Of a stretch of 64,000 nt of DNA, positions 43,498 through 62,881 are shown in pieces. The notes under the pieces are model-generated. The model made no database searches. It saw only the letters and a list, made by a program, of their open reading frames with translations, and was not told the origin of the DNA. The DNA comes from Paraphysomonas bandaiensis (Eukaryota > Protista > Chrysophyceae): NCBI GenBank assembly GCA_965644295.1, contig CBFFRP010000297.1:930001-994000 (forward strand). The letters are read 5' to 3'. Each line of letters starts with the position of its first letter. Within the stretch, counting starts at the first letter, position 1. Both the position numbers and the translations under genes were made by a program.

Positions 43498-44396
43498 CTA
43501 ATTCTTTCGCCACCTCCCAATCGCAGTGGACAGTTTTAATCCCCATGCGTTAATAGTGGTTCCATCTCTACCTTCGTGGGAAAGCTCTGGTGGTAGCATT
43601 TCAAGTTGAAAGTGTTGAAACCCGAGGGGCTCCAGTAATGACGCGTAGTCTTCCATGGTCACTTTGAAAGGTGGTCCACCTTCCTTATCACCAATAGGAT
43701 ACATAATGGTGCAAAGTTCACCTCCTGGTGCCACAAGTGCTGCCATTTTCTTTGCCCAATCTCCTCTCACAGAAGGATCTAATGCACAAAAAAATGTATA
43801 GTCATAAATAAACTGAAATTGATTGGGTGGATCTTCAGGTAACTCAAAGAATGATGCCTGTTTAAACACAACAGATTCATGAGGTGGTTTCTTATCATCA
43901 GGTACAGATTGATAATATTCTTTGGCAGCTTGTATTGCTGTATTTGATAAATCCACTCCAATAGCTACTCTATCTGATGTAGCTAATAAGAGGACATCAT
44001 ATCCTCGACCACATCCAGGTACAAGAGCTCGACCAGTTGGGACTGTTCCTTCCTTTACCATTTGTTTTAATGCAGGTAGAGGTTCATAGATATCGAATTT
44101 ATCACCAGGGGAGATACCTTCTTGCCACATTTCTAATAGGGGATGATTAGTGTGGTGTGTATATAGGAGTGGATGGGTAGGGACATATACATATATATGG
44201 GACATATACATATATATACTTACATACATATGCATACATAGACTTATATAGGCATATATAGGCATAGTAGTAGATACATATAGAGGTATACGTATACATA
44301 CTGATACATGCATATATTATAGGCATACACTCATACATACATACCTTCCCAACGAGGGTGTTCCCTCTCACTTCTTGTATTACTTTCATCACCCAT
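43498..44396 (-). CDS. SAM-dependent thiol/halide methyltransferase (TPMT/HOL family); exons 44345-44396 and 43498-44132
   Basis: RALVPGCGRGYDV, IYDYTFFCALDP and GGPPF motifs. A phase-1 GT-AG intron filled with microsatellite joins the exons. Confidence 0.9.
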
Positions 44397-45701: not shown

Positions 45702-45707
45702 TTCCAA

Positions 45708-46206
45708 AAAAAAAAATAGTGATGATGATGGCCGCTCCGCTCGGCATATGGCTTCATTTTAAATAATCCCATATTTCTATACTTTCTTAATTAATCCATA
45801 TTTCTATATCTATTTTAAATAATTCCATATTTCTATACTTTCTTAAATAAATCCATAAATTATTATTATTATTATTAATTTGACATTTTGGCATTGGCAT
45901 TTCAAATAAAATTATAAGAACTAAAATTATAATTCGAGATTAAAGAAAAAAACAATATTATGTCATGCCAAAAATGCCATTTACTTCATCACCATCAATA
46001 GCAGTAGCGTGTATATATCCCATCGCCACACTATGCACACATACTATAAACATACTAGCTACTGCACCAACACTATCTATACAAATCTTCTCTTTAAATA
46101 CTATTGTTATATGAAATGGTTTAAAGAATTATTTTTCATTTTATTTATTTTAATTTAAAAAGCAATTAAAAACACTTAAAGATAATTTGATATATAATAT
46201 TATAAA
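45708..46206 (+). repeat. Left terminal inverted repeat
   Basis: Reverse complement of 62379-62875. I saw one substitution (AATCCC vs AATTCC near 45768) plus a difference in homopolymer length. Confidence 0.97.
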
Positions 46207-46210
46207 GTAA

Positions 46211-46570
46211 ATGAACATTTTCAAAATATTTCTTAATGTCGATTTTAAACTCAAAGATGATGCTAAACTGTTAGGCGCCAAGTGGGATTCAAATATTAAA
46301 TGTTGGTTTGTATACAGTAATCATTTAAATTGCGAAACACTTGTTGAAAAGTTTGGGGAAAATAAAGAAAAAAGGAAGGATTACAATAAACAGTATAGGA
46401 AGCTAAATAAAGAAAAGATAGCTGAATCGAGAAAAATATACAGAGAAAAGAACAAGGACAAGATAAACGAGAAACATAATTGTGAATGTGGTAGTAAATA
46501 TAGAAAGATCGATAAAGCTAGACATATCAGAACAAAGAAACATGTCAAATATATGGAGGCATTGCATTAA
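46211..46570 (+). CDS. Viral protein with a DUF5710-like N-terminus and a C2H2-type zinc finger
   Basis: LNVDFKLKDDAKLLGAKWD...CWFV; CECG...ARHIRTKKH. Confidence 0.7.
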   Translation: MNIFKIFLNVDFKLKDDAKLLGAKWDSNIKCWFVYSNHLNCETLVEKFGENKEKRKDYNKQYRKLNKEKIAESRKIYREKNKDKINEKHNCECGSKYRKIDKARHIRTKKHVKYMEALH

Positions 46571-46710
46571 TTCCTCATTTTTCCATCAGCAACCATTTCA
46601 CAACTTACTTGTAGTATATAGCGGGAAAGCTGTTGTGTTGTCATCATCGCAATATCAGTTAATGACTTTCTAGCCTTCTTACTGGCCTTGCCTACATTGA
46701 TGTCGTCCAT
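46567..46710 (-). CDS. Small viral ORF (47 aa, MDDINVGKASKKARKS...)
   Basis: Read by hand because it is below the ORF track cutoff. It has a TATA-rich upstream motif like the other viral genes and shares the TTAA stop with the facing gene. Confidence 0.5.
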   Translation of the reverse strand: MDDINVGKASKKARKSLTDIAMMTTQQLSRYILQVSCEMVADGKMRN

Positions 46711-46857
46711 ATTCACAATATGTATAATATATAATATGTATGAACTGTCACAACGTTTACAATTGCAAGTATCTTTTGCGATATTTATATATGCATAATT
46801 TATTTTTTCAGTTTTGCAATATCCTGGATATGCTGAATAACTTGGTCAAAACACTAA

Positions 46858-47054
46858 TTTGAGTGAAAACCCCCCTCTGTTCACTCATTTTGAGTGAAAA
46901 CCCCCTCTGTTCACTCTTTTTGAGTGAAAACCCCCCTCGTTTCACTGGTTTTGAGTGACAACACCCCTCTGTTCACTGGTTTTGAGTGAAAACACCCCTC
47001 TGTTCACTGGTTTTGAGTGAAAACACCCCTCTGTTCACTCATTTTGAGTGAAAA
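46858..47054. repeat. Viral palindromic tandem repeat, ~31-bp unit, 6 full copies plus a partial seventh
   Basis: TTTGAGTGAAAAC(A/C)CCCCTCTGTTCACT(CA/GG)T, with an AGTGAA...TTCACT dyad in each unit. Confidence 0.92.
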
Positions 47055-47135
47055 GTACCAATTTCGAGAGAAAACCCATATTTTATTTGTGGAAACCCAT
47101 TTCTGTTTTATAATACAGTAATATATAGAGACAAT

Positions 47136-48080
47136 ATGAAACATTTTTACACAGATGAAACATTTACATACGTTGTGACCACTGCTAATTTAACTTCAGG
47201 AGATAATGGATCCTGCCAGATACCTATGCTCGCCATCCTTCCTAATGATGTTGAGTACTTTATATGTGTTCCCGTATACTTTCAATCAACATCAAATTTA
47301 TTCTCTACTCCTGCTTCAAGCACTGTAGTATTGGAAGCCAAGGACTTTGTTCACACTGGATACTCTACCAATGGTTTAACAGAGTTCAAAGCAGTAACAC
47401 CCCCTTTATTTGGAGCACAGGGATCTCAACCGAGAGTAGGACTTTTTAACACTGTTGACCAAATGCATTACATAGTTAAAAACTTCAATAATAAAACCAT
47501 TCAATTTACATTTCGAAATTGTGAAGGCTTTGAACAGGATTGTGTAGCTCTTGGTGGATGGCTTAAACAATGGATATTGTATTTATCTCTTACTCCAATA
47601 AGAGCAGAAAAACCGCATTATATCATATCAAACATACAAAAATCTTTCACTTATACGATTACCAATAAAGGGGCTGAAGGATCAGTGAATGATTGCTACA
47701 TAACACTTCCTGCAATAAACGATAATTATAATAATTACTTTGTAGATGTTGTAAATTGCAGTGTAAACAGTGATACTTTTAATTTAGCTTCCATGAGATA
47801 TATCAATATATATGCTTTTGACTGGGCTGAAAATGGATACGGTGGATATAATAATAGGACTGATAGAATGATAATATGTAGTCCATTTATGAAATTTGAT
47901 GATGAACCTTCTCTATTCGGTGGAGATTCTGCAGTATTTAAAATATCAAATATGAAAACAAATAGAAGAATTAGATTTAAAATGGAACAAGCAAATATGA
48001 ATGATGTTGACGCATCAGAAGTAGATATCGGTGGAACGTCATATTATTATATAACATGTAAAATAACGCCAATTAACTAG
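47136..48080 (+). CDS. Viral protein with two tandem penton-like (single jelly-roll) domains
   Basis: Internal duplication (FTYVVTTAN...SCQI / FTYTITNK...DCYI; each half ends (L/I)TPI). It parallels the N- and C-terminal strands of the penton at 52801-53538. Confidence 0.6.
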   Translation: MKHFYTDETFTYVVTTANLTSGDNGSCQIPMLAILPNDVEYFICVPVYFQSTSNLFSTPASSTVVLEAKDFVHTGYSTNGLTEFKAVTPPLFGAQGSQPRVGLFNTVDQMHYIVKNFNNKTIQFTFRNCEGFEQDCVALGGWLKQWILYLSLTPIRAEKPHYIISNIQKSFTYTITNKGAEGSVNDCYITLPAINDNYNNYFVDVVNCSVNSDTFNLASMRYINIYAFDWAENGYGGYNNRTDRMIICSPFMKFDDEPSLFGGDSAVFKISNMKTNRRIRFKMEQANMNDVDASEVDIGGTSYYYITCKITPIN

Positions 48081-48105
48081 TAATATTTTCTGTTATAAAT
48101 ATATA

Positions 48106-48561
48106 ATGCAAAATAACAATAGTTTTACATATGTTATTTCATCTGCCAATGCAGTTTCAGGAGATGCTGAAAACTGCTATATAGATTTAGATCCCCTACC
48201 ACATGATTATAACTGGTACTCTGTTCAATGCACAGGATTTATAATGAATTGTGAGTCATTAGCTGTTGGACATCCTCAATATGTTTTATTGGTAGCAGAT
48301 GATTTGGCAGAAGATGGATATTACCAAGGTTTCGATGCCAATCAGTGTGTATTATCATACTTGAATACCGATGATACAGTTTCACAAATGACATCAGGAG
48401 AAGGATCTCAGTTTAAAGTTAAAAATTTTAAACAAAAAAGAAGAATACATTTTAGTTTATATGAACCAGATTTAACACCTATGGCTGGTGTTGTAGATGA
48501 CTCTGCGACAACATACTGGTGTATATCATTGCTGTTTACCCCTATTTTAGATCTGCAGTAA
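48106..48561 (+). CDS. Viral protein with one penton-like domain, paralogous to 47136-48080
   Basis: SFTYVISSAN...NCYIDL...FKVKNFKQKRRIHFSL...WCISLLFTPI. Confidence 0.6.
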   Translation: MQNNNSFTYVISSANAVSGDAENCYIDLDPLPHDYNWYSVQCTGFIMNCESLAVGHPQYVLLVADDLAEDGYYQGFDANQCVLSYLNTDDTVSQMTSGEGSQFKVKNFKQKRRIHFSLYEPDLTPMAGVVDDSATTYWCISLLFTPILDLQ

Positions 48562-50136
48562 ATCTATGTGTGTTTTCCAAAATATTGAACCTGATCCTAC
48601 AGTTTGAAAATCATTATATGTATGAATCTCAAAAGTCCAATTATCTGCAACATCTCCCACAGTAAATATGAGGGGTGCTAGAGTACACCCAACACGGCTT
48701 ACACTTCCACGATTTGCGTCCCATATACCTGGACCATAAAGAGTTGCTCTTTCTAGCGTTCCATTTTTCTTAACTAATACACTCCCGCGTATATCTGTCC
48801 ATGATTTAATACCCATAATATCAAAAGAAACCTGTAACATATATCGACCTTTGTACTGAATGTAACCTGATGAATCAATCATATCGGAATCGCCACCTGT
48901 AGGTGTTGTACTTAGCTCCGATGAAGTCATATAGTGTCCTCCACTAGCTGTCTGATATGTGCTGTTATAAGCCATAGATGTGAAGTATGTTACTGGATCA
49001 TCAGTTTCTTCCCAATAACAGTTTTTTTTACTGGTTAGTGCATCTAAATCCGTTCTGTCAGAAGAAGTGAATGCTGTTGTTTGTAGAGTGGCATCTGGAA
49101 ATTCTATTTTTTGATAACAATTGATGTGATCACATCTTATTTCATCAATTGCTCCCCCTCCATCTGCTTTTAACAATGTATTCGTTGGATAAGTCCATTC
49201 ATTAGATGTTCTTGTAATATCATCTAACAAAGAGCTATAAGTAGAACTAAACGCTTTTGTTTGTTCACTAGCATCTGGAAATTCAATTACTCCACTTGTT
49301 CCTGTAACTTCTAATCTGCAACTATTTCCAGTTAATCTTAAAGTACTCCCTGTTCCTGAGACACTATGTAAAGCATATGCTTTATTCAATAACAAATCAC
49401 TTGTTATAGTTAAATCGTCAAAACCTCCACCAACATAAGATAAAGGTGTTATAGTTGATTCAATAGTTGCAATGTCAGATGTATTGGTTGCTATATTTGA
49501 TGTGTTAGTAGATATGTTTGTTGTGTTGGTAGATATGTTTGATGTATTGGTTGCTATATTTGATGTGTTAGTAGATATGTTTGATGTGTTGGTAGATATG
49601 TTTGATGTGTTAGTAGATATGTCAGTGGTATTAGTGGATATATTAGTTTCCGCTGTTGAGAGATCTACATCAATACTAGCAATGTCTGCCGTATTAGTGG
49701 ATATATTAGTTGCATTTGTAGATATGTCAGTGGCATTAGTTGCGATATTAGTTGTATTTGTAGATATATTAATTTCCGCTGTTGAGAGATCTACATCAAT
49801 ACTAGCAATGTCTGCCGTATTAGTGGATATATTAGTTGCATTAGTGGATATATTAGTTGCATTTGTAGTCATTTGAGTTTGTGCGTTTGAAGTGAGTCCA
49901 TCAATATAACTTAGCTCAACATCTGTGATGGTAGTTCCATTTGCGACAATACTAGCCCCTGATTGCATTGTAATATCAGTATCAATAATAATGTTACTTG
50001 TTTCAAGTGTATCTAAATAAATATTATCACTTGTTAGACTGCCAGTTGTTATTTCATCGGCTTTTATTGTTTGTAAACCATTCAAAGACGGTATGTTTAA
50101 TGATGTATAACCATTGTTCATAATATCGTTATACAT
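48547..50136 (-). CDS. Putative fibre/spike (receptor-binding) protein
   Basis: Long NISTNT(S/A) heptad coiled-coil, two IEFPDA(S/T)xQTxAF motifs typical of viral fibres, and a beta-rich C-terminal head. Confidence 0.75.
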   Translation of the reverse strand: MYNDIMNNGYTSLNIPSLNGLQTIKADEITTGSLTSDNIYLDTLETSNIIIDTDITMQSGASIVANGTTITDVELSYIDGLTSNAQTQMTTNATNISTNATNISTNTADIASIDVDLSTAEINISTNTTNIATNATDISTNATNISTNTADIASIDVDLSTAETNISTNTTDISTNTSNISTNTSNISTNTSNIATNTSNISTNTTNISTNTSNIATNTSDIATIESTITPLSYVGGGFDDLTITSDLLLNKAYALHSVSGTGSTLRLTGNSCRLEVTGTSGVIEFPDASEQTKAFSSTYSSLLDDITRTSNEWTYPTNTLLKADGGGAIDEIRCDHINCYQKIEFPDATLQTTAFTSSDRTDLDALTSKKNCYWEETDDPVTYFTSMAYNSTYQTASGGHYMTSSELSTTPTGGDSDMIDSSGYIQYKGRYMLQVSFDIMGIKSWTDIRGSVLVKKNGTLERATLYGPGIWDANRGSVSRVGCTLAPLIFTVGDVADNWTFEIHTYNDFQTVGSGSIFWKTHIDLLQI

Positions 50137-50171
50137 TATAATTAGAAATTTAAAAAGTGTATTTATTTATC

Positions 50172-51587
50172 TCAGAATTGGATGTATGCAATTCCAGATT
50201 CGCATACCATAACGGCGTCATACATAGCATAAGTATCAAATCTAACGGATGGAGTGGTGGCATTAGCATTAAAACTCATGTGCCAGAACACATCATCATT
50301 AGATGTATTATATCCTGAGTAGATAGAATCTTTGTCTGCATTTGAATAAGTTTCAAGATCCATACCAACAATGAAACTTTCGGAACTAGCGTTATCAGTA
50401 ACGTAAGCTTCTGTTTCATCATTAACAACTGGTACATCTACATCATAATCACCTAAATCGATATTAGGTTCATGATTGATATCAGACACACTACCAATAG
50501 CTTTTATAGCTTCAATGAAAAACTCTGGAACAGTTTCTGGAGCCTTAGAAGGAACAACCTTAGAGCCCAATCTCAATGTATACGATGCTAAATTATAATG
50601 ACATGATGACATAGGAAAGTATGTTATAGCACCATCTGCTTTTTCTCTTTGTGTCATAAATAGAGACTTCAAGCTGTTAAATTTAGCTGGCACTGGTATA
50701 CTTACTTGCGTCGATGCGTTTGCCAGTGTTGCATTATATACATAGTTTCTCCATGCTGGCACTACCCACTCTAATCTTCCACCAGGAGCGGAATTATTAA
50801 TAATACTCATTGCTTCACTTCCAAGTTCCATAAATTGAGCAACAAATTCGCAGTTGTTTACTTTAAATGATGACAAAGCGAGTTCAGAACATAAAAACTT
50901 TGATGGAGATGAAACTAATTGAAGTTCTAATCTAAGAGGTGCTGATGTCATTGCAAATAGCGGAATGTATTTGTCAGAGAGAGATCCAACAATTGAGAGC
51001 AAGTTAATGGTGTAAGTTCTAGTAAGAGTATCACCACCCGCCGCGATATCTGCAAACTGTGTAGTCTGTGCGTCATCGATAAGTCTTTCACCTGAGTTAA
51101 TTGTAAAAACTTGGTTGGTTGCCCCTTGAATTTTTGTTAACAATGTACCTGCATCGGCTACTGTTGAATCAGTAACATCACAGTAGCTATCTCTACATAA
51201 GCCTGCCATTACATTAAGTTTTCCCTTTACAGAATCACCTGATTGTTGCAATGACATTAGCGTCCCTACAAGGTTACCGTAGTTATCTATATCTTCAAGA
51301 AGTTGGGATCCGTGATATAGTCTTAGTCTTTGGATGCATCCATGAGCCCCTGCTCTGTCTAATCTTACATATGCATTGGCACCTGCTCCATTAGTTACCG
51401 TCAAATCAAATTTCAAGAGTGATTCGGAACCAGCCATAACCAAATTTTGAGATGTAGGGATATTGATTATAATAGTCTGCCCATCTGTGTAGTTTCCAAC
51501 GCCATTCAAAGGTTGTACGTGAGTGCTAAAGTTGCGTGCGTAAGCGCTCGATCGCTTATTTTCGTATTTTAGATTTCTAGGGATCAT
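50172..51587 (-). CDS. Major capsid protein, double jelly-roll, PLV type
   Basis: 471 aa. QP.NG..Y..GQTIIINIP, IQRLRLYHGSQLLEDIDNYG, IPLFAM..PLRLELQL and FIVGMDLE..SG.NT. Located in a module with the penton and ATPase. Confidence 0.88.
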   Translation of the reverse strand: MIPRNLKYENKRSSAYARNFSTHVQPLNGVGNYTDGQTIIINIPTSQNLVMAGSESLLKFDLTVTNGAGANAYVRLDRAGAHGCIQRLRLYHGSQLLEDIDNYGNLVGTLMSLQQSGDSVKGKLNVMAGLCRDSYCDVTDSTVADAGTLLTKIQGATNQVFTINSGERLIDDAQTTQFADIAAGGDTLTRTYTINLLSIVGSLSDKYIPLFAMTSAPLRLELQLVSSPSKFLCSELALSSFKVNNCEFVAQFMELGSEAMSIINNSAPGGRLEWVVPAWRNYVYNATLANASTQVSIPVPAKFNSLKSLFMTQREKADGAITYFPMSSCHYNLASYTLRLGSKVVPSKAPETVPEFFIEAIKAIGSVSDINHEPNIDLGDYDVDVPVVNDETEAYVTDNASSESFIVGMDLETYSNADKDSIYSGYNTSNDDVFWHMSFNANATTPSVRFDTYAMYDAVMVCESGIAYIQF

Positions 51588-51646
51588 AATAGTTATATAT
51601 TATATGGATAAAATAATTATCTATATAATTTCAAAATAAATGCGTT

Positions 51647-52262
51647 TTACACTGTGTTGTTATTCATGTATTCTATATGTTTTTTGGTTTTAATATGTTT
51701 ATGCATAGAATCTCTTCGCATAACTTGACCACAAGTACAGGTAACTTCTTGAGCACATCGTTTTTCATATGGTTCTTTTTTTATCTTTTCTGGGTTCTTT
51801 TATTCCCTTATGTTTGTTTGTTTTCAGATGTTTGTGAATAGAATCTCTTCGCATTACAAGGCCACAAGTACAGGTAACTTCTTCAGCACGACGTTTATTA
51901 TTGGCGTCCTTTCTGTCCTGTCTTTGATTCCTTATACGTTCGTATTCCTTTTTACTCTCCGCGGTATGAACAACGTTTTTGATTTTATTAACACAATCGT
52001 TATTTTGGATGTAGTACCCTTCTCTTGCATGAAGTTCATCTTTGCTGTCACACGGATAGTTTTCTACTAAATAAATGGCACAGTTGGGTTCATCAAGTAT
52101 TTTAAAGGATGAAATGTAGTGATCTTTTCCTTTTTTGTAACCATTATAGTTGTTGCGATGCTTTGCCAATCTTCTGGCTAATGTAGGCTCACATGTTGAT
52201 CCGTAATATGTTTTACCACCTCCAACAATTTTGTAAATTTTACCTTTCTGATAATCAGGCAT
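51647..52262 (-). CDS. GIY-YIG endonuclease with two C-terminal zinc fingers; the second lies beyond a frameshift in an A7 run (51776-51782)
   Basis: GKIYKI...YYGST...RLAKH...ELHAREGYYI. CTCG..MRRDS.HKH.KT.KH occurs twice. The uninterrupted ORF is 51765-52262. Confidence 0.85.
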
Positions 52263-52329
52263 ATTCTTTTATACTCTAATATATTCTTATATCTTAAAGT
52301 ATTTTAAATTAAAAATTGACTTAAACAAT

Positions 52330-52773
52330 TTAAGCAAATCCATCGCCGGCTTCATCTGCAGTTGCTTGTTCAATCTTTTTCCTTACGTTAAATTTTTCCA
52401 GATCATTAGCGTGTTTGTTGGCATGTTTAAGAGCTTTGTTACTTGCGTTCTTATATTTGTGTAAAGCTTTATCCCCTTTATCAAGCCCTTTTCTAGCACC
52501 ATGCAATCCTTTACTTGCTAAAGCTATACCATCGCCTACTATCGGGACGCTACCAGCACCAGCGTCAACTGCAGCGCCTAATACTGCATCGGCTATATCA
52601 ACGCCCTTTCTTGCGTTGTGTAATACCTTTGAACCACTGTTAACAACTTTACGGTTAATCTTTTGGGCTTTATCAAGAACATCGTGAGTTTTATGTCCTA
52701 ATTGGTGAGCTTTCTTATCTATTTTCCGCCCTAGTTTTCGGGTAGCACGATCAAACTTCTTACCTAGTTTCAT
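52330..52773 (-). CDS. Basic viral protein with a Gly/Ala-rich amphipathic segment (candidate core or membrane-penetration protein)
   Basis: Lys-rich helices around AVLGAAVDAGAGSVPIVGDGIALA, inside the structural module. Confidence 0.55.
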   Translation of the reverse strand: MKLGKKFDRATRKLGRKIDKKAHQLGHKTHDVLDKAQKINRKVVNSGSKVLHNARKGVDIADAVLGAAVDAGAGSVPIVGDGIALASKGLHGARKGLDKGDKALHKYKNASNKALKHANKHANDLEKFNVRKKIEQATADEAGDGFA

Positions 52774-52800
52774 GTATATAATATATACACTATATTTTAA

Positions 52801-53538
52801 TTATTCTATATCAAGCTCCAGAGTTAAAGAAAAATGAATACCATTCAGATCAAGCACATCATCATCTTGATCAGTAAGCTTGATATGTAAATTTGTTAAA
52901 TTGTGTACATTATAGATCATATTACGAACATTGTATATATTTGAGTAACTGATCATACTGTGATGGGAAGAATCTACAGGTATACTACATAATATGTTGC
53001 TTTTATTAGGAGTAGAATTATTTATATTATTGATTTGAAAGTTATCTGATGTAACATACACATTTCTTATTGTAAACAAATTCAATGATATGGTACTTGT
53101 AAGTACTTGTGACGTTGATGAGTAAGTTGTATCATCATCTGAAAACCCTAGAACCTCAAAACAGGTAGAATCTGCTTCAAATGTGAAATCATATGTGCTA
53201 TGTGAAAAGGTTAATTTGTTTGTTTTACTGTTATATGTTATTGTTAAAGCGGGTATGTCGGTTGTAATAGCTGTCATCAAGGTATTAACATTATAATTCC
53301 CTTCCGTAATTGTTACCGTTTGAACTCCACCACCATTGACAGTATACTTTAATGTATTGTTTATTGAACTGATGTTATAAAACGAGTAGGGTATCATAGC
53401 CGTTTGAACTGAACAAAATATCTTTCTATGTTTTGGAATATTGATGACCGGTAAATAAAAAACACAATCAGATGTATTGCCGTTAATATATTTACTCGCA
53501 GTCTTGCTGTTTAAAAAGAGACATATCTTTTCGCTCAT
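52801..53538 (-). CDS. Minor capsid protein (penton)
   Basis: LFLNS...IPYSFYNI...ITEGNY...LGF...IKLTDQ..VLDLNG.HFSLTLEL pattern of PLV/NCLDV pentons. Confidence 0.85.
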   Translation of the reverse strand: MSEKICLFLNSKTASKYINGNTSDCVFYLPVINIPKHRKIFCSVQTAMIPYSFYNISSINNTLKYTVNGGGVQTVTITEGNYNVNTLMTAITTDIPALTITYNSKTNKLTFSHSTYDFTFEADSTCFEVLGFSDDDTTYSSTSQVLTSTISLNLFTIRNVYVTSDNFQINNINNSTPNKSNILCSIPVDSSHHSMISYSNIYNVRNMIYNVHNLTNLHIKLTDQDDDVLDLNGIHFSLTLELDIE

Positions 53539-53881
53539 CTATACTATTACAATCATATATTTTTCTATTCATCAACTCCTCCAATGGGGAATCACTAATA
53601 TTTTCGGCTATAGCTTCTAATACTTGTTGCCAACCAGGAATGTGAAATCCAGTTCCATGAGGCATATTATCTAACACGTGACGTATACCTCGTCTTTTAA
53701 AAGAATCGTTGTAGTGTAACATATCTATATCTATAACGTCATCAAGTCGTTTTGGTCTGATCATATAATCAAGTTCATCAGGTAGTTCCTCCTCTGAGTC
53801 AGATGATAAATAGAATTGTAAATCTTCATCATATTGCAAAGATAATGAATCATTGTCGGAATCGTATTCTTGAATATCCAT
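53492..53881 (-). CDS. Acidic hypothetical viral protein
   Basis: 129-aa ORF with TATATA directly upstream; sits between the ATPase and penton genes. Confidence 0.6.
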   Translation of the reverse strand: MDIQEYDSDNDSLSLQYDEDLQFYLSSDSEEELPDELDYMIRPKRLDDVIDIDMLHYNDSFKRRGIRHVLDNMPHGTGFHIPGWQQVLEAIAENISDSPLEELMNRKIYDCNSIDERKDMSLFKQQDCE

Positions 53882-53906
53882 TTTTATATAATACTATTCT
53901 ATAAAT

Positions 53907-54638
53907 TTAATTATTGTCAATTACCAGAGTGTTAAAGTTTTTAAACATCTTATTTTCAACTGTATCAACATCCAAATGATTATAGTTTTTATCATATACA
54001 TAATCATACAACTCCACAGCATTATCTTTGGTCATGTTTAATAACTCTGATGTTACAACTGTCCACTCTTGTTGATTTTTGGGCTTAAACAATGTCATAT
54101 TAGTTATTTGCTTTCTTAATGTGAGTGGAAATAAATTGTATGATTGCAAGGTAAATACAAACGCAGTATTTAAATGCCTAGCTTTAATAAGCATTCTGTT
54201 TAAATGTTTAATCAAAACATTGTCTTTTAAATGATTTGCATAATCATCAATTATAACTAAATTATATTCTGGAGGTATTCCCTGTTCAATATTGCTCTCT
54301 TTTAAACCTGCAAGCTCATCATATATTATATCTAATAATTCTGGTGTTAATTCATGATACACCTTTCCATGCTCACTAAATGGATGCTTTTCTACGCTAA
54401 GAAAGCTACTTTGTGGTGTAATCAAGTATATGTTATCAAACTTGGATCTATAAAATCGTGATGACTTAAACATTGACAATAATAAGCTAGTTTTTCCTGA
54501 ACCTCCTGACCCTATCAAAGTATATATAAACCCGTTTCTATGTGGTAAGTGTTCATTGATATTAGGTATGTATACATCCATAACCTCTTTGATTGGGGCT
54601 GTATTAGGCAAATCTGATGGTGATTCTGTTATCTTCAT
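53907..54638 (-). CDS. A32-like (FtsK-HerA) genome packaging ATPase
   Basis: Walker A GSGGSGKT, Walker B VIIDD, ARH arginine finger and LQ....P..LR motif. Confidence 0.92.
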   Translation of the reverse strand: MKITESPSDLPNTAPIKEVMDVYIPNINEHLPHRNGFIYTLIGSGGSGKTSLLLSMFKSSRFYRSKFDNIYLITPQSSFLSVEKHPFSEHGKVYHELTPELLDIIYDELAGLKESNIEQGIPPEYNLVIIDDYANHLKDNVLIKHLNRMLIKARHLNTAFVFTLQSYNLFPLTLRKQITNMTLFKPKNQQEWTVVTSELLNMTKDNAVELYDYVYDKNYNHLDVDTVENKMFKNFNTLVIDNN

Positions 54639-54697
54639 ACTATACTATGAGTGAATATATTATTTTACCAAAGATTTTTTTCTTCGATAACTATATA

Positions 54698-55243
54698 ATG
54701 GTAGAACCCGAAGAATATATAGAAGAATCAATCCCCTTGACGAAACCAAAGAGAGTAGTCAAACAACTTCCCACCATACCTGAGGAATCTGTTAGCACAG
54801 CACCCCCTCAGCCCGCTCCTGTTAAGAAAAAGAGAGTTATGACAAAGCCTAAAACACAAGCTCAACTAGAAGCATTTGAAAAGGCAAGACAAAAGAGAGC
54901 AGAGAATGCAGTAAAGAGGAAACAAGAAAAAGAATTACATTATGCAAAACTATTAGCCCAGCATCAATCAGAAAAACAACCGGAACCAGAACAAGTAGTA
55001 TCGAAGCCAGTTCCTAGACGAGCACCCAGACAAAAGATTATTTATGAAGATTCTGAATCTGAATCTGAACCTGAAATTGTGTATGTAAAGAAACCATCTA
55101 AGAGAAAACCGAAAAAGAAAACAATTGTTATTGAATCATCATCAGAATCAGAATCAGATGATGATAGAACTGTATCAATACAAAGGCAACCAGTTATTCA
55201 AAGACAACAGACACCATTTAATTCAGATGACTATTTTGCATAA
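54698..55243 (+). CDS. Basic/acidic low-complexity viral protein (candidate DNA-binding or core protein)
   Basis: ATG at 54698 after TATATA; KKKRVMTKPKTQAQLEAFEKAR motif and SESE tracts. Confidence 0.7.
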   Translation: MVEPEEYIEESIPLTKPKRVVKQLPTIPEESVSTAPPQPAPVKKKRVMTKPKTQAQLEAFEKARQKRAENAVKRKQEKELHYAKLLAQHQSEKQPEPEQVVSKPVPRRAPRQKIIYEDSESESEPEIVYVKKPSKRKPKKKTIVIESSSESESDDDRTVSIQRQPVIQRQQTPFNSDDYFA

Positions 55244-55272
55244 TATTATCTTTCACTAATATATAAATACTA

Positions 55273-56499
55273 ATGAAGGACAAGAAAATCTATTTATCTC
55301 TTGACGACCTACATAAACTTTATGGAATAGCACCCGATTTAATTCTAAAACGAAAAAAAAATAAAAAGAAACGTAAAGCAAAAGGTAAAAAGAAAAGTAA
55401 TTTTGGTACAGGTGTGAATAAACAATTTGGAGGCGGAGGTGTAGGAGGTGTATCAGGTGTTGGTGCAGTAACCAGCTCAACAATTGATAGAAGAGAAATT
55501 GATATTTTGAGAGGACAACTAAATGAAGCTAAAAACAATCCAAAGAATCCCGCCAATGAGGGAGTGTTAAGACTTGAAAATGTACCAGAAGAGTTGAAAG
55601 AGACTTTGAAATTTGCCAAATTGGCTAACGATGGTTACGCATCTGGAAATGTTAAAGTATCTCAAACTTCAGCAGGTAATTTAATAATGGGTCCAACATC
55701 ACAAAAGCAAAAGACAGCACAAAGAAGAAGAGCTATTGACATATCCAGAAACGTAGATCATACCATCAATCCAGCACCACCAATACCATCCAGAAATGAT
55801 TTGATGCACAAGCAACCATTAGAATTAAAATCAGAATCTGATGATAATAAGGTTGAAGAACTAGATGATGATGAAAAAGAAGATGTTGAAGATATACCAT
55901 TTCCTGCAGAACCTAAAACTAAATTAGTTAGGGTTAAAAAAGTAGGAAGAACGGAAGCACAAGAAGAAGCAATAAAAAGATTAGTTCAATTGAATAAAGA
56001 TAAGAAAAGTGAAAGATTGAACAGAGAAGGTATGGCGAGAGAAGACTATGATGCCGATGATGCCGATAAAATGATTAAAGCAACAAAACACTTTGAACAG
56101 AAACATATGCGTCAAGGATTTGATGGTATATTTGTTCATCATGAGCCGATCACCGGACAAATGAATAGAACGAGACGAACACATATGAATATAGAACAGA
56201 AAGATCAAAAAGAAGATAAAGATATGCACAATTTGAAAAAGAAGCATTATGCCTCAACCCACAAAATCAAGCCACCAAGCACACCGGTGCCTAGTCAATA
56301 CTTCATGAAATCTAATCGAATAGGAATAACAAATTCTAACAGTGACAGTAGTGATGAAGATGATACACCTGTTCGTATTCTACATAGCAAGTCGAAACCA
56401 GTAGGGGTTAGTAGAATCGATCCAAAAAGCACACCAGTGTCAAAATTGGAATTTGGTTGGGGGGATTGGAGCAGTGATAATTCTGATGGATTTGTTTAA
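55273..56499 (+). CDS. Hypothetical viral protein, Lys-rich and low-complexity
   Basis: 408-aa ORF with an NLS-like KRKKNKKKRK and an RTEAQEEAIKR motif similar to the one in the preceding gene. Confidence 0.7.
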   Translation: MKDKKIYLSLDDLHKLYGIAPDLILKRKKNKKKRKAKGKKKSNFGTGVNKQFGGGGVGGVSGVGAVTSSTIDRREIDILRGQLNEAKNNPKNPANEGVLRLENVPEELKETLKFAKLANDGYASGNVKVSQTSAGNLIMGPTSQKQKTAQRRRAIDISRNVDHTINPAPPIPSRNDLMHKQPLELKSESDDNKVEELDDDEKEDVEDIPFPAEPKTKLVRVKKVGRTEAQEEAIKRLVQLNKDKKSERLNREGMAREDYDADDADKMIKATKHFEQKHMRQGFDGIFVHHEPITGQMNRTRRTHMNIEQKDQKEDKDMHNLKKKHYASTHKIKPPSTPVPSQYFMKSNRIGITNSNSDSSDEDDTPVRILHSKSKPVGVSRIDPKSTPVSKLEFGWGDWSSDNSDGFV

Positions 56500-56544
56500 A
56501 CACATATATAAAATATTTAAATATTTTGTGTTGCAATTATATAA

Positions 56545-57036
56545 ATGCGAAGAGTAGTTATTAATAACCCAGACACTCGGCCTCTTGGTGTTGAAGAAGT
56601 AGAGCAAGAGGTAAAACGTGAATGTAGTTTCAGACGCAGATCCATCCCAGACAAAAAACTTTTTAATGTTGAATTAAATGGACTCTCAGACAAAATTAAG
56701 GAAATAAAACTTGAAAACCAACAATATGAACTAGTTACAAAGATTCAAGCTGTTCTAGATCTATTTGATCCTGAATCAAATAAATACAATGAGCAAATTC
56801 TCTTGTTTGCTTGCCAATCGGTTGAAAATTTCATTACCAAGCCAAAATCCGGAGATCGAAAGCTTGCTGTTGTAATTGAAGCTGTTAAAAAGTATTTCAA
56901 TGAGGATATTGAATTGATTGCTAAAATGGTGGAAATATTGCTCCCACGAATTAAGAAAATGAATATTGTTAGACGCAATTGGAAACGTGTGGTCCGTTTT
57001 TTTTGCGGTCTGTCGCAGAACGAGCTGTCGATATAG
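56545..57036 (+). CDS. Hypothetical viral protein
   Basis: 163-aa ORF with TATATAAATG start context. Confidence 0.65.
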   Translation: MRRVVINNPDTRPLGVEEVEQEVKRECSFRRRSIPDKKLFNVELNGLSDKIKEIKLENQQYELVTKIQAVLDLFDPESNKYNEQILLFACQSVENFITKPKSGDRKLAVVIEAVKKYFNEDIELIAKMVEILLPRIKKMNIVRRNWKRVVRFFCGLSQNELSI

Positions 57037-57117
57037 CTGTATCAAAAGCTTTTAAAATGTTACTGTTGCCCATGATCCTTGCCATTTTATAATTTTATTG
57101 ATTATTAATATATAATA

Positions 57118-57414
57118 ATGAATAAAGAAAAAGTTAAACATTACCAACGTACATACTACGTAAAGAATAGGGATAAAATGATTTTGAGAAATAGAATATA
57201 TTACCATGAACACCAAGCACAATGTAATGCAACATCAAAGGCTTGGTATAAAAAGAAAGTAAAGGAATTGAAAGAAAGTGGAGAATATATGGATTTTGTG
57301 AAAGAAAGGAATGCAAAGCAAAGAAAAAGTAGGAAAGTTAAGGGGAGAAATAAACAACGGAATAAGGAATGTTATAAAGTAGATGATGATAGCTTTATAA
57401 TAATATTTAATTAA
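57118..57414 (+). CDS. Small basic viral protein
   Basis: 98 aa with YYxKN/YYHEH/WYKK repeats; TATATA upstream. Confidence 0.6.
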   Translation: MNKEKVKHYQRTYYVKNRDKMILRNRIYYHEHQAQCNATSKAWYKKKVKELKESGEYMDFVKERNAKQRKSRKVKGRNKQRNKECYKVDDDSFIIIFN

Positions 57415-57794
57415 AGATTTTTATGTTTGCTTGAACACTTATGTTTAGTTTTTTGAGATTCAGGGAATGATTCTTGACATCCCCAACAGTACATTAATGG
57501 ATCAGTTTCACGAGCAGGGAGCTGATGCTTCAGCGAGTCGTCTTGTTTAGATTTCTTAATGTCTTCTAATTCTTGTTTAATAATTTCTAATTCGGCTACT
57601 ATATCATTGCGTGGTTGCTTTCGTGAAGCTCTTGATTTACATAAATTTGTTGTTTGATGTTTTTTCATGTTTTGATGTGATACCACTTTACCACATAAAG
57701 AGCATTCTTCTTTCTCAAAAAGTTTAGCACATATCTGTTCTTTCTTTGATGCATAGTATTTTTTGTTATACTCCTTTCTTGATTGAGTATCCAT
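57411..57794 (-). CDS. Zinc-finger viral protein
   Basis: CSLCGK...KKHQTTNLC and CWGC...KHKC motifs. Confidence 0.7.
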   Translation of the reverse strand: MDTQSRKEYNKKYYASKKEQICAKLFEKEECSLCGKVVSHQNMKKHQTTNLCKSRASRKQPRNDIVAELEIIKQELEDIKKSKQDDSLKHQLPARETDPLMYCWGCQESFPESQKTKHKCSSKHKNL

Positions 57795-57878
57795 TATGTA
57801 TATACTATTATATATTAATATATTTTTAAGCCATTTTAATTATTATTATTTATATTTTTATATGTAGCTATTATATAT

Positions 57879-58933
57879 ATGAATGCTTTGATTGATAAAT
57901 ATGGGATCGATGAAACATTGACAAGACCCCTAAAGAAATCAAAAGGTAAAAAGAAGAAGTATAATAGAATTAAGGATAATATTCCATTGAAGGAGGATTA
58001 CAACTTCATGGCTGATGTATTGCACTTGCCAAAGGATAAAAAAGGGTATAGGTACTTGTTAGTTGTGGTGGATTTAGCAACAAATGAATTTGATATGGAA
58101 CCAATGAAAACAGAAGATAGCGAGGAAACATATTATCGGCAATGAAAGCTATATTTAAACGTAAGCATATCAACAAGCCATACGCATCAATAAGGACAGA
58201 TGGTGGTGCTTCATTTAAGAAAAAGGTTCATAAGTACTTAGTTGGGGAGGATATTTTACACAAAACTGGAGTGGCTGGTCGGCATACTCAGAGTAGTGCA
58301 GTGGAGAGTTTGAATAGAACATTGGGTAGATTTTTTAATGGATATATGAATTCTGTAGAATTAGAAACTGGGAAAGTATATCGAGAATGGACGGATATCG
58401 TTGACAGGTTGAGAATAGATTTAAATAAACTTCGCAAGATAGATATTTCACACAATGATCCAGCAAGTGATTTAAAAGCGGTACCAGATATTACTGAACC
58501 TTCTAAATTGAAGGTAGGCGATCTGGTTCACAGAAAATTAGATAAACCCAAAAACGCACTCAATGAAACTCTTAATTCGGACGTGTTCAGAGAAGGCGAT
58601 TTTAGATGGGATCCTATACCTGTCAAGATTACAGAAGTCTTATTCTATGGAGGTGATGTGACATACAGATATATGTTAAGTGGTATTAAAAATGCATCTT
58701 TTACAGAAGATGAACTTTTATTAGCAGAAGATCAAGAAGAAGATGAACAGATTGAAATTAAAAAGATTCTTGATAGAAGATTCTTTGATGGTGAAGATCA
58801 TTACCATGTATGGATGTATGGGGAACTAAAGAAAGATGCTGGATGGTACGCGAAGAGTGATTTAATTAAAACTGGTAATAAGAAGCTATTACAAGATTAC
58901 GATAAAGAATTTAATAAAAAGACAAAGGTTTAA
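57879..58933 (+). pseudogene. Retroviral-type (rve, DDE) integrase with C-terminal chromodomain, split by a frameshift at ~58130
   Basis: ADVLHLP..YLLVVVD in ORF 57879-58145; IRTDGG..F, AVESLNRTL, LKVGDLV and IKKILDRR..YHVWMYG..W in ORF 58142-58933. Removing one TA from ACATATTATCG fuses the two frames. Confidence 0.88.
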
Positions 58934-60117
58934 TCTAAATGTGTATACCCGTTTGCATGTCTCCATTCAATATTACCAGATGTTTTATCTTCTCGTAATA
59001 AATTTGGTATATCTAATTTTGGATCAACCTTGAAAGTAACATTATCCGTATGAATTCTTATCACGTTATCAATATCTTTCAATGCAACTTTAGCAATTGT
59101 GTTTCTAGTTAGGGCCATTAAGAAAGCTTTAATTCTTATTTGATATGAATACGGATTTTCTGTATCTAGAAGTGTATAATAATCTTTTTCTCCATCATGT
59201 TCAACTTTGTGGACAACCCATTTATGTTTTGGAAGTGTACCCCAATCATAACCCTGATCTATTAAATCTTGTTCAGTTTTGCACATTCTATTTCGTTTTG
59301 TAAGATTTCCCCATAGAGATGAGGTGATATGTTTGATTAATTTATTTTTTGGAAAAGCTTCTTTGATAGCAAATAGTTTATCAAACCAAGTTCTGAATAT
59401 ATCATTGCATGAAACCAAATCTTTCTTTTTGTATAAGTATGCGTTTGGCTTGCCATCTTGAAATAATTCAATTTCCACATTAAATTGTTTTTTGTATTTT
59501 AGTGCTTGCTGTAGTGACGAATGTGTATATATATTTCGCGGAGAAAATGCAAATATCTTTCGGAAGTTATTATCATTGCATGTTATTTTTACTCTGTAAT
59601 AACCTGTTTTAAGCTTACGTCTTTTCTTTAATTTCTTTAGAATCTTTTCTTTGCCTGGTTTATTAGGAATCATCATATCACCATAAGCTAATAATCTAGG
59701 GAAAAAACTTGAATAATCATATCCAAATGATTCATATGTACCTGGATCACAAAATGTTAAACCACCATTGAAACAAGCATCAATCCATTTGTTTTCAGTT
59801 TTACCAATCTTCTCATGATCTTCCCATTTGCCTTTACATAATCGTTGAAATGTAAGTTTGACAGCGTTCTCATGAGTCCAATACTTTTTGTAATCAATAC
59901 TAAGAATTTTTAGTTGATTAAATCTAAGTTCTCTACACCATGCTCGAAAATCTTTTGCATATTTCTTGATACCTTCATCAGAACAGTCATATCCTTTGAA
60001 CAAATAATATCGATACTCTAGTTTACAAACTTCTTTGAGTGGCATATCAGACCATGTGTATGGATCGGTGCACATTACTCTATATGTGCCATCAGGTTTT
60101 TTATAGTAAAAATTCAT
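58930..60117 (-). CDS. Minimal family B DNA polymerase (pPolB-related) with no recognisable exonuclease domain
   Basis: FNGG, motif A YDYSSFFP, motif B KHITSSLWG and motif C IHTDNV in only 395 aa. Confidence 0.82.
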   Translation of the reverse strand: MNFYYKKPDGTYRVMCTDPYTWSDMPLKEVCKLEYRYYLFKGYDCSDEGIKKYAKDFRAWCRELRFNQLKILSIDYKKYWTHENAVKLTFQRLCKGKWEDHEKIGKTENKWIDACFNGGLTFCDPGTYESFGYDYSSFFPRLLAYGDMMIPNKPGKEKILKKLKKRRKLKTGYYRVKITCNDNNFRKIFAFSPRNIYTHSSLQQALKYKKQFNVEIELFQDGKPNAYLYKKKDLVSCNDIFRTWFDKLFAIKEAFPKNKLIKHITSSLWGNLTKRNRMCKTEQDLIDQGYDWGTLPKHKWVVHKVEHDGEKDYYTLLDTENPYSYQIRIKAFLMALTRNTIAKVALKDIDNVIRIHTDNVTFKVDPKLDIPNLLREDKTSGNIEWRHANGYTHLD

Positions 60118-60179
60118 TCTAATTATTATATATTTATTATAGATAATTATTTCTTAAGTGTTTTTTATATGCGTTTCAA

Positions 60180-60599
60180 TTAAAAGAAATTATCATCATC
60201 AGAATCAATATCGTCGTCTGGAATAAAGAACATTAGTTGAATTTGATAAAAGTTTTTGAATTTATTAATATCTCCACCATCTTTAACAAAGGACTCATAG
60301 TAATCATCCATATCATCATCGTCTTTAATTTCAGAATTGTATCCTTTAAGTGTATGCATCTTTTCAATGTTCTGAGCTCTGACAACAAATTTAGTACCGG
60401 CTTTTGTTGAGGGGTCTTTCTCTATTGCTGATACCATACCTCTGATATCATCTAAAGTAATTTTGGCTTTTTTATCTTTTCTATATATTTGTATTGTTTT
60501 CCTTTCACCATCTGGTATCTTTTTTGAATCTATTACCTTCTTATTGTAAACAGACTTTGCTTTGGACTGCTTAGATTTTACAGACTTCTTTTTAACCAT
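60180..60599 (-). CDS. Hypothetical viral protein in the replication module
   Basis: 139 aa with a basic N-terminus and acidic C-terminus, between the helicase and PolB genes. Confidence 0.65.
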   Translation of the reverse strand: MVKKKSVKSKQSKAKSVYNKKVIDSKKIPDGERKTIQIYRKDKKAKITLDDIRGMVSAIEKDPSTKAGTKFVVRAQNIEKMHTLKGYNSEIKDDDDMDDYYESFVKDGGDINKFKNFYQIQLMFFIPDDDIDSDDDNFF

Positions 60600-60643
60600 T
60601 ATATAATTATATACTATATAATAATTCCTTAAGTAAATTTTAA

Positions 60644-62374
60644 TTATAATAAATTTAATATATCATTAATATCATCTTTGGTAAAACTTGTATCTTCCGG
60701 TTGTATGAATATATTCTTTTTGAATGTTGGTGGGATAGAATCGCATTCATCATCAGACTCGTATTCATAAGTTACCTTTCTAACTTTTTTATGTTTAGAT
60801 GGATTGCATTGTTGTGCTTCTTGAAGTTGCTGTTTGAGGCTTTCAATTTCTGCTTTAGCATCATCTAGTTTATTTTCTAATTGTACCATATAATCAGTGA
60901 TATGATTTTCTTTAACACCATTTCCAACTAGCTTCTTAATTTTCAATTTAATATGTGTAAAGCATCCTCGTACGCCATCAACCCGTGAACTTGGGTTGTA
61001 GATTAAACCTTTGTCTTTTAAAGAAGTTATTATTTGAACCATAGATAAATGCTTATCTGGATACGCCTTTTTAAAATACATTTCCATATCAGATTTGCTT
61101 ATTCTATCACTTGATTTATCTGACTGACAAAAATGGCCATCTACAAAATCTTGCATAACATCATTTGTGTTCAATACTGAATCTTTTGTTTCGGTAAAGT
61201 TTTTATTGAACTTTGGTTTTTCTCCTTTAGACCACTTGTAACAATATTTTGCCAAAATATCAAACCATGCGTTTAAGAGACCACCCTTGACTATCTTATC
61301 CAATAAATATTTATCTTTGAGATAAATGTGATTTGATTCATCCACTTCATTGGGTTTATCCACAAATGTGCTTCCATGGGTATAACCTCTAAATCTTCTG
61401 ACAACACCAGTATCAACTTTAATACCTATCATAGTATTAGCAGTGATGAAAGGTTTTGAGTTGTGAGTAATATCGTGAGATTCATCTTCATATAATTTAG
61501 TAGTTTGCAATTTACCTTCACAGAACTTTTTAAACAGTGTTTCATCAATCTTGACATCTTTGATTTCGTTTATCCAAGTAATTCTTATTTGAGGATTGTT
61601 AGCAAAAGTATTTAAGATCTTGTCAATTTTACTGTTGTTCTGACTGAATGTATCGTTTTTGAGTTCCTTGAAATAACATTCGAATGCTTTCTGTGATAAT
61701 TCCATTATGAAAGATTTTCCCGCAGAAGCTTTTCCTAAGAGAAACAATGTATCTTGATCAACATTAGACTTACCACTAAGGGAAGATCCAAGAGTTAGAA
61801 GTACACATTTCATATCTTCATTATCGGGGTAAATCTTTCTAATATGTGCCATCATCTCTTCTCTCTCTTCTTCGGATGATTTAACGTAATCTCTGTGTAT
61901 ATATTGAGTTATGTAATGCTGGTGTAATTTTCTTTGCCTAAATTTCTTGTGTAGAAGATCATAGTAACCATTGTTAAAATGTATCTCATATGGAGTATCA
62001 TTAAATAGTACATCGTTCGTATCTAGCATGGTAATAATTTGATTATAATACGTTTCAACCATTGCATTTTGAAACATCTTAGGGAATGTTTTAACATTTT
62101 TGTATTTCAACAGTTGTTGCTGATCCTCACTTAAAGCTTGGTAAGACTTTTGTATATAACTTGTGATTATTGTCATTAGTTTTGCTTTGCTCATGCTCAA
62201 TGGCAATGCGGTGTAAGTTAAGTTATTATTAATGATGTACAATAAATGTTTACTGATAAAGCAATAATTCCGAAGTCCTTTGACTATAGTGGAAGCTTTG
62301 TCGTTGGGGTATTGAGAGGTTGCAAGAAGATCTATATCATCTGAGTTCATTAAATCGGAATTCTTAAAATTCAT
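60644..62374 (-). CDS. Superfamily 3 (D5-like) helicase
   Basis: D5_N-like IHFNNGYYDL, Walker A GKASAGKS, Walker B WINE and motif C ITAN. ATG at 62374. No primase motifs recognised. Confidence 0.88.
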   Translation of the reverse strand: MNFKNSDLMNSDDIDLLATSQYPNDKASTIVKGLRNYCFISKHLLYIINNNLTYTALPLSMSKAKLMTIITSYIQKSYQALSEDQQQLLKYKNVKTFPKMFQNAMVETYYNQIITMLDTNDVLFNDTPYEIHFNNGYYDLLHKKFRQRKLHQHYITQYIHRDYVKSSEEEREEMMAHIRKIYPDNEDMKCVLLTLGSSLSGKSNVDQDTLFLLGKASAGKSFIMELSQKAFECYFKELKNDTFSQNNSKIDKILNTFANNPQIRITWINEIKDVKIDETLFKKFCEGKLQTTKLYEDESHDITHNSKPFITANTMIGIKVDTGVVRRFRGYTHGSTFVDKPNEVDESNHIYLKDKYLLDKIVKGGLLNAWFDILAKYCYKWSKGEKPKFNKNFTETKDSVLNTNDVMQDFVDGHFCQSDKSSDRISKSDMEMYFKKAYPDKHLSMVQIITSLKDKGLIYNPSSRVDGVRGCFTHIKLKIKKLVGNGVKENHITDYMVQLENKLDDAKAEIESLKQQLQEAQQCNPSKHKKVRKVTYEYESDDECDSIPPTFKKNIFIQPEDTSFTKDDINDILNLL

Positions 62375-62378
62375 TTCG

Positions 62379-62875
62379 TTTATAATATTATATATCAAAT
62401 TATCTTTAAGTGTTTTTAATTGCTTTTTAAATTAAAATAAATAAAATGAAAAATAATTCTTTAAACCATTTCATATAACAATAGTATTTAAAGAGAAGAT
62501 TTGTATAGATAGTGTTGGTGCAGTAGCTAGTATGTTTATAGTATGTGTGCATAGTGTGGCGATGGGATATATACACGCTACTGCTATTGATGGTGATGAA
62601 GTAAATGGCATTTTTGGCATGACATAATATTGTTTTTTTCTTTAATCTCGAATTATAATTTTAGTTCTTATAATTTTATTTGAAATGCCAATGCCAAAAT
62701 GTCAAATTAATAATAATAATAATAATTTATGGATTTATTTAAGAAAGTATAGAAATATGGAATTATTTAAAATAGATATAGAAATATGGATTAATTAAGA
62801 AAGTATAGAAATATGGAATTATTTAAAATGAAGCCATATGCCGAGCGGAGCGGCCATCATCATCACTATTTTTTT
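62379..62875 (-). repeat. Right terminal inverted repeat
   Basis: Reverse complement of 45708-46206. Confidence 0.97.
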
Positions 62876-62881
62876 TTCCAA

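Follow-up and report, generated by a model that had tools for sequence, protein, structure and literature searches.

A short polymerase of the protein-primed lineage, a stand-alone SF3 helicase and a candidate detached terminal protein in an integrated mavirus-like virus of Paraphysomonas bandaiensis

The family B DNA polymerase of protein-primed type (pPolB) found in mavirus joins a terminal protein (TP), a vOTU domain and a polymerase palm in a single chain, retains no more than a vestige of its exonuclease domain and is missing the first Asp of motif C (Krupovic et al. 2024, PMC11161782). Exonuclease loss goes together with the gain of a separately encoded superfamily 3 (SF3) helicase, S3H (PMC11161782). 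According to published work, adenoviruses, virophages and polinton-like viruses trace back to the fused TP-vOTU-polymerase of polintons, and separation of the TP from the polymerase, seen in adenoviruses and one coral polinton, is regarded as a rare and informative occurrence. More recently, a 2026 survey named palm-retaining truncated pPolBs (PRT-pPolB) and described pMVRE group 1, whose members feature DUF5906 helicases, rve integrases, chromodomains and terminal inverted repeats (TIRs) and are frequent in Ochrophyta (PMC13215967), and a preprint of the same year places stand-alone SF3 helicases on a tree of family B polymerases (PolBs). Here we analyze three adjacent genes from the chrysophyte Paraphysomonas bandaiensis, located in a 64,000-nucleotide stretch of contig CBFFRP010000297.1 (positions 930,001 to 994,000; hereafter the window). 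Together they make up the replication module of a polinton-/mavirus-like virus, 17.2 kb long, that is integrated in a eukaryotic chromosome.

A sequence-only reading of the window had described a minimal exonuclease-less polymerase, a primase-less helicase and an orphan gene between them, and had suggested that they could represent an undescribed replication strategy. All three open reading frames (ORFs) are present and intact:

58930..60117, minus strand: short palm-retaining pPolB, 395 aa, consisting of an inactive exonuclease remnant (residues ~1-115) and the polymerase domain
60180..60599, minus strand: conserved protein of 139 aa and candidate for a free-standing terminal (priming) protein, encoded immediately upstream of the polymerase
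60644..62374, minus strand: stand-alone SF3 (D5/P4-type) helicase without a primase domain, 576 aa from the supported ATG

The strategy as such turns out to be known, since the literature already describes, for mavirus-like elements, a pPolB that lacks the exonuclease beside an SF3 helicase encoded separately, both as mavirus pPolB with S3H (2024, PMC11161782) and in pMVRE group 1 (2026, PMC13215967). What we did not find described in the main texts is a short form without TP-vOTU, an upstream small gene as a candidate detached TP, and a K-T-(T/S)-G motif in the polymerase.

We consider it very likely that the three genes constitute an active replication module of the mavirus type. In the explanation that we favor, and that we judge to be probable as a whole, an active short pPolB would have kept only an inactive exonuclease remnant and would operate without fused TP and vOTU protease domains. 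The separate SF3 helicase would unwind the linear genome ahead of the polymerase, and the small protein would be a terminal protein detached from the polymerase, with its Tyr100 receiving the first nucleotide at the TIR ends.

The short polymerase, its family and the helicase

The translated polymerase gene contains the three palm motifs in recognizable form, with motif A as D-Y-S-S-F-F-P (Asp134), motif B comprising Lys262 and S-S-L-W-G, and motif C as H-T-D (Asp358); a GG motif lies near residue 118. We counted conservation over 238 aligned family members. Asp134 and Lys262 are present in every sequence (238/238 each), and Asp358 (237/238), Gly381 (233/238) and Lys378 (230/238) are nearly as constant, whereas the first position of motif C is occupied by His in 127 members, Gln in 56, Tyr in 19 and Asn in 11. 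Because the catalytic columns are near-invariant, the motif variants to which the sequence-only reading had drawn attention (HTD, SSLWG and SFFP), all of which are present in the translation, are not a matter of chance.

The ~115 residues that precede the GG motif form three strands, a helix, a strand and further helices in the predicted structure. The acidic set of an exonuclease is not conserved in this N-terminal region, in which Glu108 is the sole invariant acidic residue, and the reported absence of Exo I-III motifs is thereby borne out. At the other end of the protein, the short family carries K-T-(T/S)-G at the place of the KxY motif, and since the chain ends 14 residues past it, the thumb is nearly absent.

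An AlphaFold (AF2) model of the polymerase built from 40 sequences reached a predicted local distance difference test score (pLDDT) of 95.6 and a predicted template modeling score (pTM) of 0.89. In a Foldseek search against solved structures, all nine matches at E <= 0.001 were phi29 DNA polymerase (best E 5e-9), with other, RNA/DNA-primed, family B polymerases appearing at E 2e-3 or worse. Against predicted viral structures, the top match was the 617-aa pPolB of mavirus (E 2e-23; template modeling score on the query, TMq, 0.77; root-mean-square deviation 3.9), followed by a 339-aa polymerase-annotated protein from a Harvfovirus bin. Structure prediction was a check proposed along with the initial description; in the model the exonuclease domain is only a remnant, and insertions lie at the positions expected for the regions TPR1 and TPR2. 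The first is a mixed insertion of ~90 aa between motif A and the fingers helix and the second a β-hairpin at 300-318 between motifs B and C, each assigned from the secondary-structure string alone. Among the relatives, the polymerases of loci L015 and L016 pass the gathering score of PF03175 (DNA_pol_B_2; 34-35 bits versus 25.8), and one of 40 aligned family members matches the same family at E 3e-5. The pPolB fold and the conserved residues indicate that the 395-aa protein is probably an active, exonuclease-deficient DNA polymerase of the protein-primed PolB lineage, as the description of a minimal enzyme beside a stand-alone helicase had implied, and its fidelity would be low.

The short length is a property of the family. 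A word search returned 162 homologues of 257-529 aa, mostly ~400 aa, and relatives of 388-433 aa can be aligned with the window polymerase from one end to the other, in one example with 70% identity over 100% of its length. An exhaustive profile search extended the family to 2264 cluster representatives (clustered at 50% identity), 974 of them with E < 1e-30 and again mostly ~400 aa long. In most of the best 150 family representatives, the match begins at residue 1. One relative comes from another chrysophyte, Epipyxis. Where members of the short family are longer, the additional N-terminal sequence is NUMOD4/HNH or DUF5710, not TP or vOTU. The homing-endonuclease-like NUMOD4/HNH_3 domain is fused N-terminally to several short polymerases (P0168, P0156, P0201, P0145 and P0136) and is alternatively encoded right after the polymerase gene (positions 6594-7082 in locus L006), an association that suggests homing-type mobility of the polymerase gene.

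The ORF of the neighboring helicase extends from 60644 to 62398 (584 aa), and the ATG at 62374 is its likely start because the alignment with its relatives begins at the ninth residue. The protein has a Walker A motif at 222-229 and weak library matches to D5_N (E 3e-4) and TIGR01613, the P4-family primase C-terminal region (E 6e-10). PHROG primase-helicase families match it in their C-terminal halves only, and no primase domain was detected in scans of Pfam, PHROG and NCBIfam, in keeping with a primase-less enzyme. It is homologous to the helicases of L006 (47% identity, E 9e-152), which carries D5_N and DUF5906, and L005 (E 4e-92). These strong matches overturned the result of a first tblastn comparison with four loci, from which the window helicase had appeared unrelated to those of its neighbors. 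Across the relatives, the same genomic slot is filled by two deeply diverged SF3 lineages.

The small upstream gene and the mode of priming

The small gene, once termed an orphan, is not one: a homologue lies directly upstream of the polymerase in 10/10 short-form loci for which upstream sequence is available, in ORFs of 103-168 aa. The window protein has six close homologues with 53-64% identity, and a profile of the gene, which includes L001 and L003 by construction, matches L006, L008, L005, L009 and L002 at E 3e-20 to 6e-8, as well as L011 (E 8e-18) and L010 (E 5e-11). Three more divergent loci have an ORF of 93-147 aa in the same place, with similarity at or below detection. The recurrent gene order is helicase, small gene, polymerase and convergent integrase, so that the co-occurrence of the three genes, another check suggested at the outset, is found as adjacency in constant order across related loci.

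The 139-aa protein begins with a Lys-rich stretch and ends in an acidic tail with aromatic residues at its terminus, the tail being limited to its closest relatives. Across 11 diverse homologues, Tyr100 is the sole invariant residue after the start Met, and in the window protein it is followed by Gly-Gly at 108-109. We predicted the structure from seven close sequences. The model, with secondary structure elements assigned by DSSP at E18-28, E31-40, H49-61, E70-76, E81-85, H94-106 and E119-127, begins with two strands and a helix, continues with two more strands and a second helix, and ends with a loop and a strand. At a pLDDT of only 69 (68.9), this order equals the topology published for the terminal-protein domain TP/D1, β0-β1-α1-β2-β3-α2-linking loop-β4 (PMC11161782). 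The sole polymerase among the fold matches of the small protein is mavirus pPolB (rank 10, probability 0.87).

A second line of evidence comes from longer relatives of the polymerase. We collected nine of these long forms, 611-724 aa in length, from IMG/VR and the word search (seven by the word search); searching IMG/VR for further long forms returned self-matches only. Residues 34-389 of the short family align to residues 270-610 of the long forms (hhalign, E 1e-46), and the H-T-D motif, Glu108 and the remaining catalytic columns are common to both groups. K-T-(T/S)-G is absent from all nine. The extra N-terminal region of the long forms contains strictly conserved Cys and His residues, which fits a cysteine protease and the published TP-vOTU arrangement. 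When the small-gene profile was compared with this N terminus in HHalign, we obtained P values of 0.006 for local and 0.005 for global alignment (1-139 versus 1-133), as opposed to 0.36 for a reversed and 0.47 for an unrelated control profile. The global alignment pairs Tyr100 with a Tyr in 8/9 long forms, with acidic residues preceding both, and also pairs Phe117 and Lys85 with a conserved Phe/Tyr and Lys, respectively. In four long-form loci, a homologue of the small gene was not detected; three of the four instead have an unrelated ORF of 77-79 aa upstream of the polymerase.

Together, these data support, but do not prove, the idea that the small gene is a terminal-protein domain split off from the polymerase. 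The sequence-only reading had put the gene forward as a candidate stand-alone terminal protein or cofactor, and the conserved position, the TP/D1-like topology, the invariant Tyr and a weak profile match to the fused TP domain of the long forms lend the first of these suggestive support. On whether the small protein is a terminal protein, our own judgment is close to evenly balanced, with a slight lean toward yes.

Several results weigh against the favored explanation. The HHalign probability of the match between the small gene and the long forms is 3-6%. The structural model of the small protein, from seven close sequences, is of medium confidence, and Tyr100 falls within predicted helix α2, in a low-confidence region; published linking residues of TPs, a Ser, Thr or Tyr with Gly or Pro close by, lie in the loop before the last strand (PMC11161782). 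The fold search with this model gave no convincing match, with uncharacterized proteins ranking best, and the match to mavirus pPolB has an E value of 0.1 and an unreported aligned region. Fusion of the small protein to a short polymerase was seen in none of 258 retrieved proteins. For the polymerase itself, neither the single sequence nor the 40-sequence profile matched anything in Pfam, PHROG, NCBIfam or PDB sequences, and because these libraries gave nothing, its identification relies on the fold and the relatives; the proposed TPR1 and TPR2 are assessed by where the insertions fall. Finally, K-T-(T/S)-G, which stands where KxY would be expected, is similar to the KTRG found in primer-independent PolBs (piPolBs).

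This last resemblance opens an alternative in which the short polymerase would initiate by itself as piPolBs do, with no terminal protein, and the small protein would be an accessory DNA-binding factor, similar to a single-stranded DNA-binding protein (SSB), that recruits the polymerase or helicase. The Lys-rich N terminus and the acidic, aromatic-ended tail of the small protein would suit such a role, and we take the tail to be reminiscent of those of SSBs; the tail is, however, found only in the closest relatives. That the polymerase has no fused TP, and that K-T-(T/S)-G occupies the KxY position in the short family but not in the TP-carrying long forms, point the same way, as does the fact that piPolBs combine KTRG at this position with loss of the first motif C Asp (PMC5695915). 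Yet Thr/Ser stands here in place of the KTRG Arg, on which primer extension by piPolB depends (PMC5695915), the conserved K-H upstream of the motif was not found in what are variable columns, and piPolBs retain an active exonuclease domain that the short family does not. The nearest structural and sequence relatives are, moreover, the TP-carrying enzymes of mavirus type, and a resemblance over four residues can arise by chance. We regard this alternative as possible but unlikely, and de novo priming overall as improbable. The further step, that the ~400-aa family starts de novo and would be the first primer-independent PolB-like replicase of eukaryotic viruses with the small protein as a new accessory factor, we consider distinctly improbable.

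A second alternative assigns the bulk of replication to a helper. Most copying of the element would fall to a replisome that comes from a giant virus or from the host and is loaded by the SF3 helicase, the polymerase would serve only in gap filling or end repair, and the small protein would take no part in initiation. Mavirus-like elements do depend on giant viruses (PMC11161782), the polymerase is without proofreading and nearly all of the thumb, and the helicase lineage has been swapped between otherwise similar modules. Against this stand the adjacency and order of the three genes, constant among deeply diverged loci and also between those with different helicase lineages, the strict conservation of catalytic residues in the 238 sequences, and the fused-TP relatives, which point to end-priming as the ancestral role; we find a helper-driven scheme doubtful. 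That the 395-aa ORF is a truncated or decayed, non-functional copy of a full-length pPolB, as a frame break in the adjoining integrase might hint by marking this copy of the element as not wholly intact, is contradicted so squarely by the end-to-end alignments, by a family that is mostly of this length and matches from residue 1, and by the retention of all catalytic residues that we give it almost no weight.

Much depends on which explanation of the small gene is correct. If it is a detached TP, then it provides another, and much more abundant, case of detachment, in a very large family of viruses from aquatic protists (2264 representatives when clustered at 50% identity), and one in which the protease domain was lost altogether. 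The resulting combination of a 400-aa polymerase, a primer protein of ~110-140 aa and a helicase would be about the smallest known PolB replicase set. If the motif likeness to piPolBs instead reflects de novo priming, the view of how these viruses replicate changes. If both ideas fail, the locus is simply a typical mavirus-like element.

The integrated element and its setting

The replication module lies at one end of an integrated element that is delimited by TIRs and stands out from its surroundings in base composition, with a GC content of ~0.33 compared with ~0.40-0.45 in the flanks. The features of the element and its setting are:

45708..62877, no strand: whole integrated virus-like element, ~17.2 kb, defined by its TIR bounds, the GC profile of the window and the viral core genes inside
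45708..46215, no strand: left terminal inverted repeat, 508 nt, containing tandem repeats of 28/56 bp
62370..62877, no strand: right terminal inverted repeat, 508 nt
45704..45707, no strand: candidate target-site duplication, left copy, CCAA, read directly from the sequence
62878..62881, no strand: candidate target-site duplication, right copy, CCAA, read directly from the sequence
57879..58933, plus strand: rve-family integrase, convergent with the polymerase, in two ORFs through one reading-frame change
53907..54638, minus strand: A32-like genome-packaging ATPase (Pox_A32, E 4e-12), conserved in relatives
50172..51587, minus strand: probable double jelly-roll major capsid protein, 471 aa, with a weak Capsid_N match
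52801..53538, minus strand: conserved gene of 245 aa, DUF5901-like, conserved in relatives
46211..46570, plus strand: DUF5710-domain gene of 119 aa that begins at the inner margin of the left TIR
41574..42920, 43498..44313, 14591..15586 and 32039..33316: flanking host-side ORFs for a phosphagen (arginine/creatine-type) kinase, a TPMT methyltransferase, an AP-complex mu subunit and an ankyrin-repeat protein

The two TIR arms are 99% complementary, and the duplication measures 4-6 bp: CCAA in the shorter reading, and TTCCAA when two bases of the terminal run are included. These repeats and the duplication fit a linear, end-primed, rve-integrated genome. Each arm contains the 28/56-bp tandem repeats ~50 nt from its terminus (45756-45880 and the mirror stretch of the right arm). 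The outermost genes both read inward from starts on the inner margins of the TIRs (46211 and 62374), and the arms may carry identical promoters.

The element has the marker set of polinton/mavirus-like elements (pMVRE group 1), with TIRs, a candidate target duplication, an rve integrase (one frame break), a pPolB, a probable capsid protein and an A32 ATPase. The rve match falls on the N-terminal piece of the integrase. In separate searches, one piece corresponded to the N-terminal and the other to the C-terminal part of an integrase that six relatives encode as a single gene; decay and sequencing error are both possible origins of the break. The capsid gene is 39-63% identical to genes of 453-467 aa in related loci. 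The element is a mosaic, with its nearest capsid in L001 (63%), its nearest ATPase in L009 (62%) and its nearest helicase in L006 (47%), and the ORFs at 55273-56499 and 57118-57414 have no match in any related locus compared. The DUF5710 domain of the 119-aa gene occurs elsewhere as an N-terminal fusion in some polymerase relatives (P0046 and P0178) and, in L003, in an additional small gene (6717-7160) that lies upstream of the polymerase.

Two near-identical contigs of 16758 and 16753 bases, L006 and L007, carry the same module. The polymerase that they encode is present on 24 metagenome contigs, 17/24 of which are near-identical to L006 in gene content, and L006/L007 may represent a complete free virus genome of the group.

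Outside the element, the flanks hold ordinary eukaryotic genes whose ORFs are without apparent introns. A minisatellite at 16779-21954 (5.2 kb, 23-bp unit, 227 copies, 92% matches) accounts for a dip in GC content to 26% and a GC skew of +0.36 over that interval. An Rfam scan of the window returned no matches.

Comparison with known systems

The best solved-structure match of the short polymerase, phi29 DNA polymerase, has motifs A, B and C in the same order and with similar spacing. It differs in its active exonuclease and thumb, in needing no helicase and in using a TP with an unrelated helical fold. The piPolB of pipolins (PMC5695915) shares with the short family the replacement of the first motif C Asp and a K-T-x-G in place of KxY. 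Its active exonuclease, the Arg in KTRG, the upstream K-H and its occurrence in bacteria and mitochondria set it apart, none of these holding here.

A terminal protein with its own gene beside that of the polymerase is known from adenoviruses and from a polinton of Stylophora pistillata (PMC11161782), and this is the arrangement that the window module would share. In both of those systems, however, a full-length pPolB with proofreading still carries a fused vOTU domain, whether active or inactivated. The window module has neither vOTU nor exonuclease, and its TP is a candidate proposed from gene position, predicted topology and an invariant Tyr.

The elements of pMVRE group 1 have a truncated pPolB, a DUF5906-type SF3 helicase, an rve integrase (in some cases with a chromodomain), TIRs and protist hosts that include Ochrophyta, all in common with the locus described here, and the relatives of the window module show the same Pfam set. 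A difference is that a terminal protein goes unmentioned in the main text of that work (PMC13215967).

Mavirus itself, Cafeteriavirus-dependent mavirus in full, shares the exonuclease remnant, the missing first Asp of motif C, the stand-alone SF3 helicase, and the rve integrase with TIRs. The K-T-(T/S)-G motif marks the short family with respect to the nine aligned long forms. The principal differences are in domain content: the 617-aa mavirus pPolB includes the fused TP (D1) and vOTU (D2), whereas the 395-aa enzyme of the window has neither, and a conserved small gene lies upstream of the polymerase instead.

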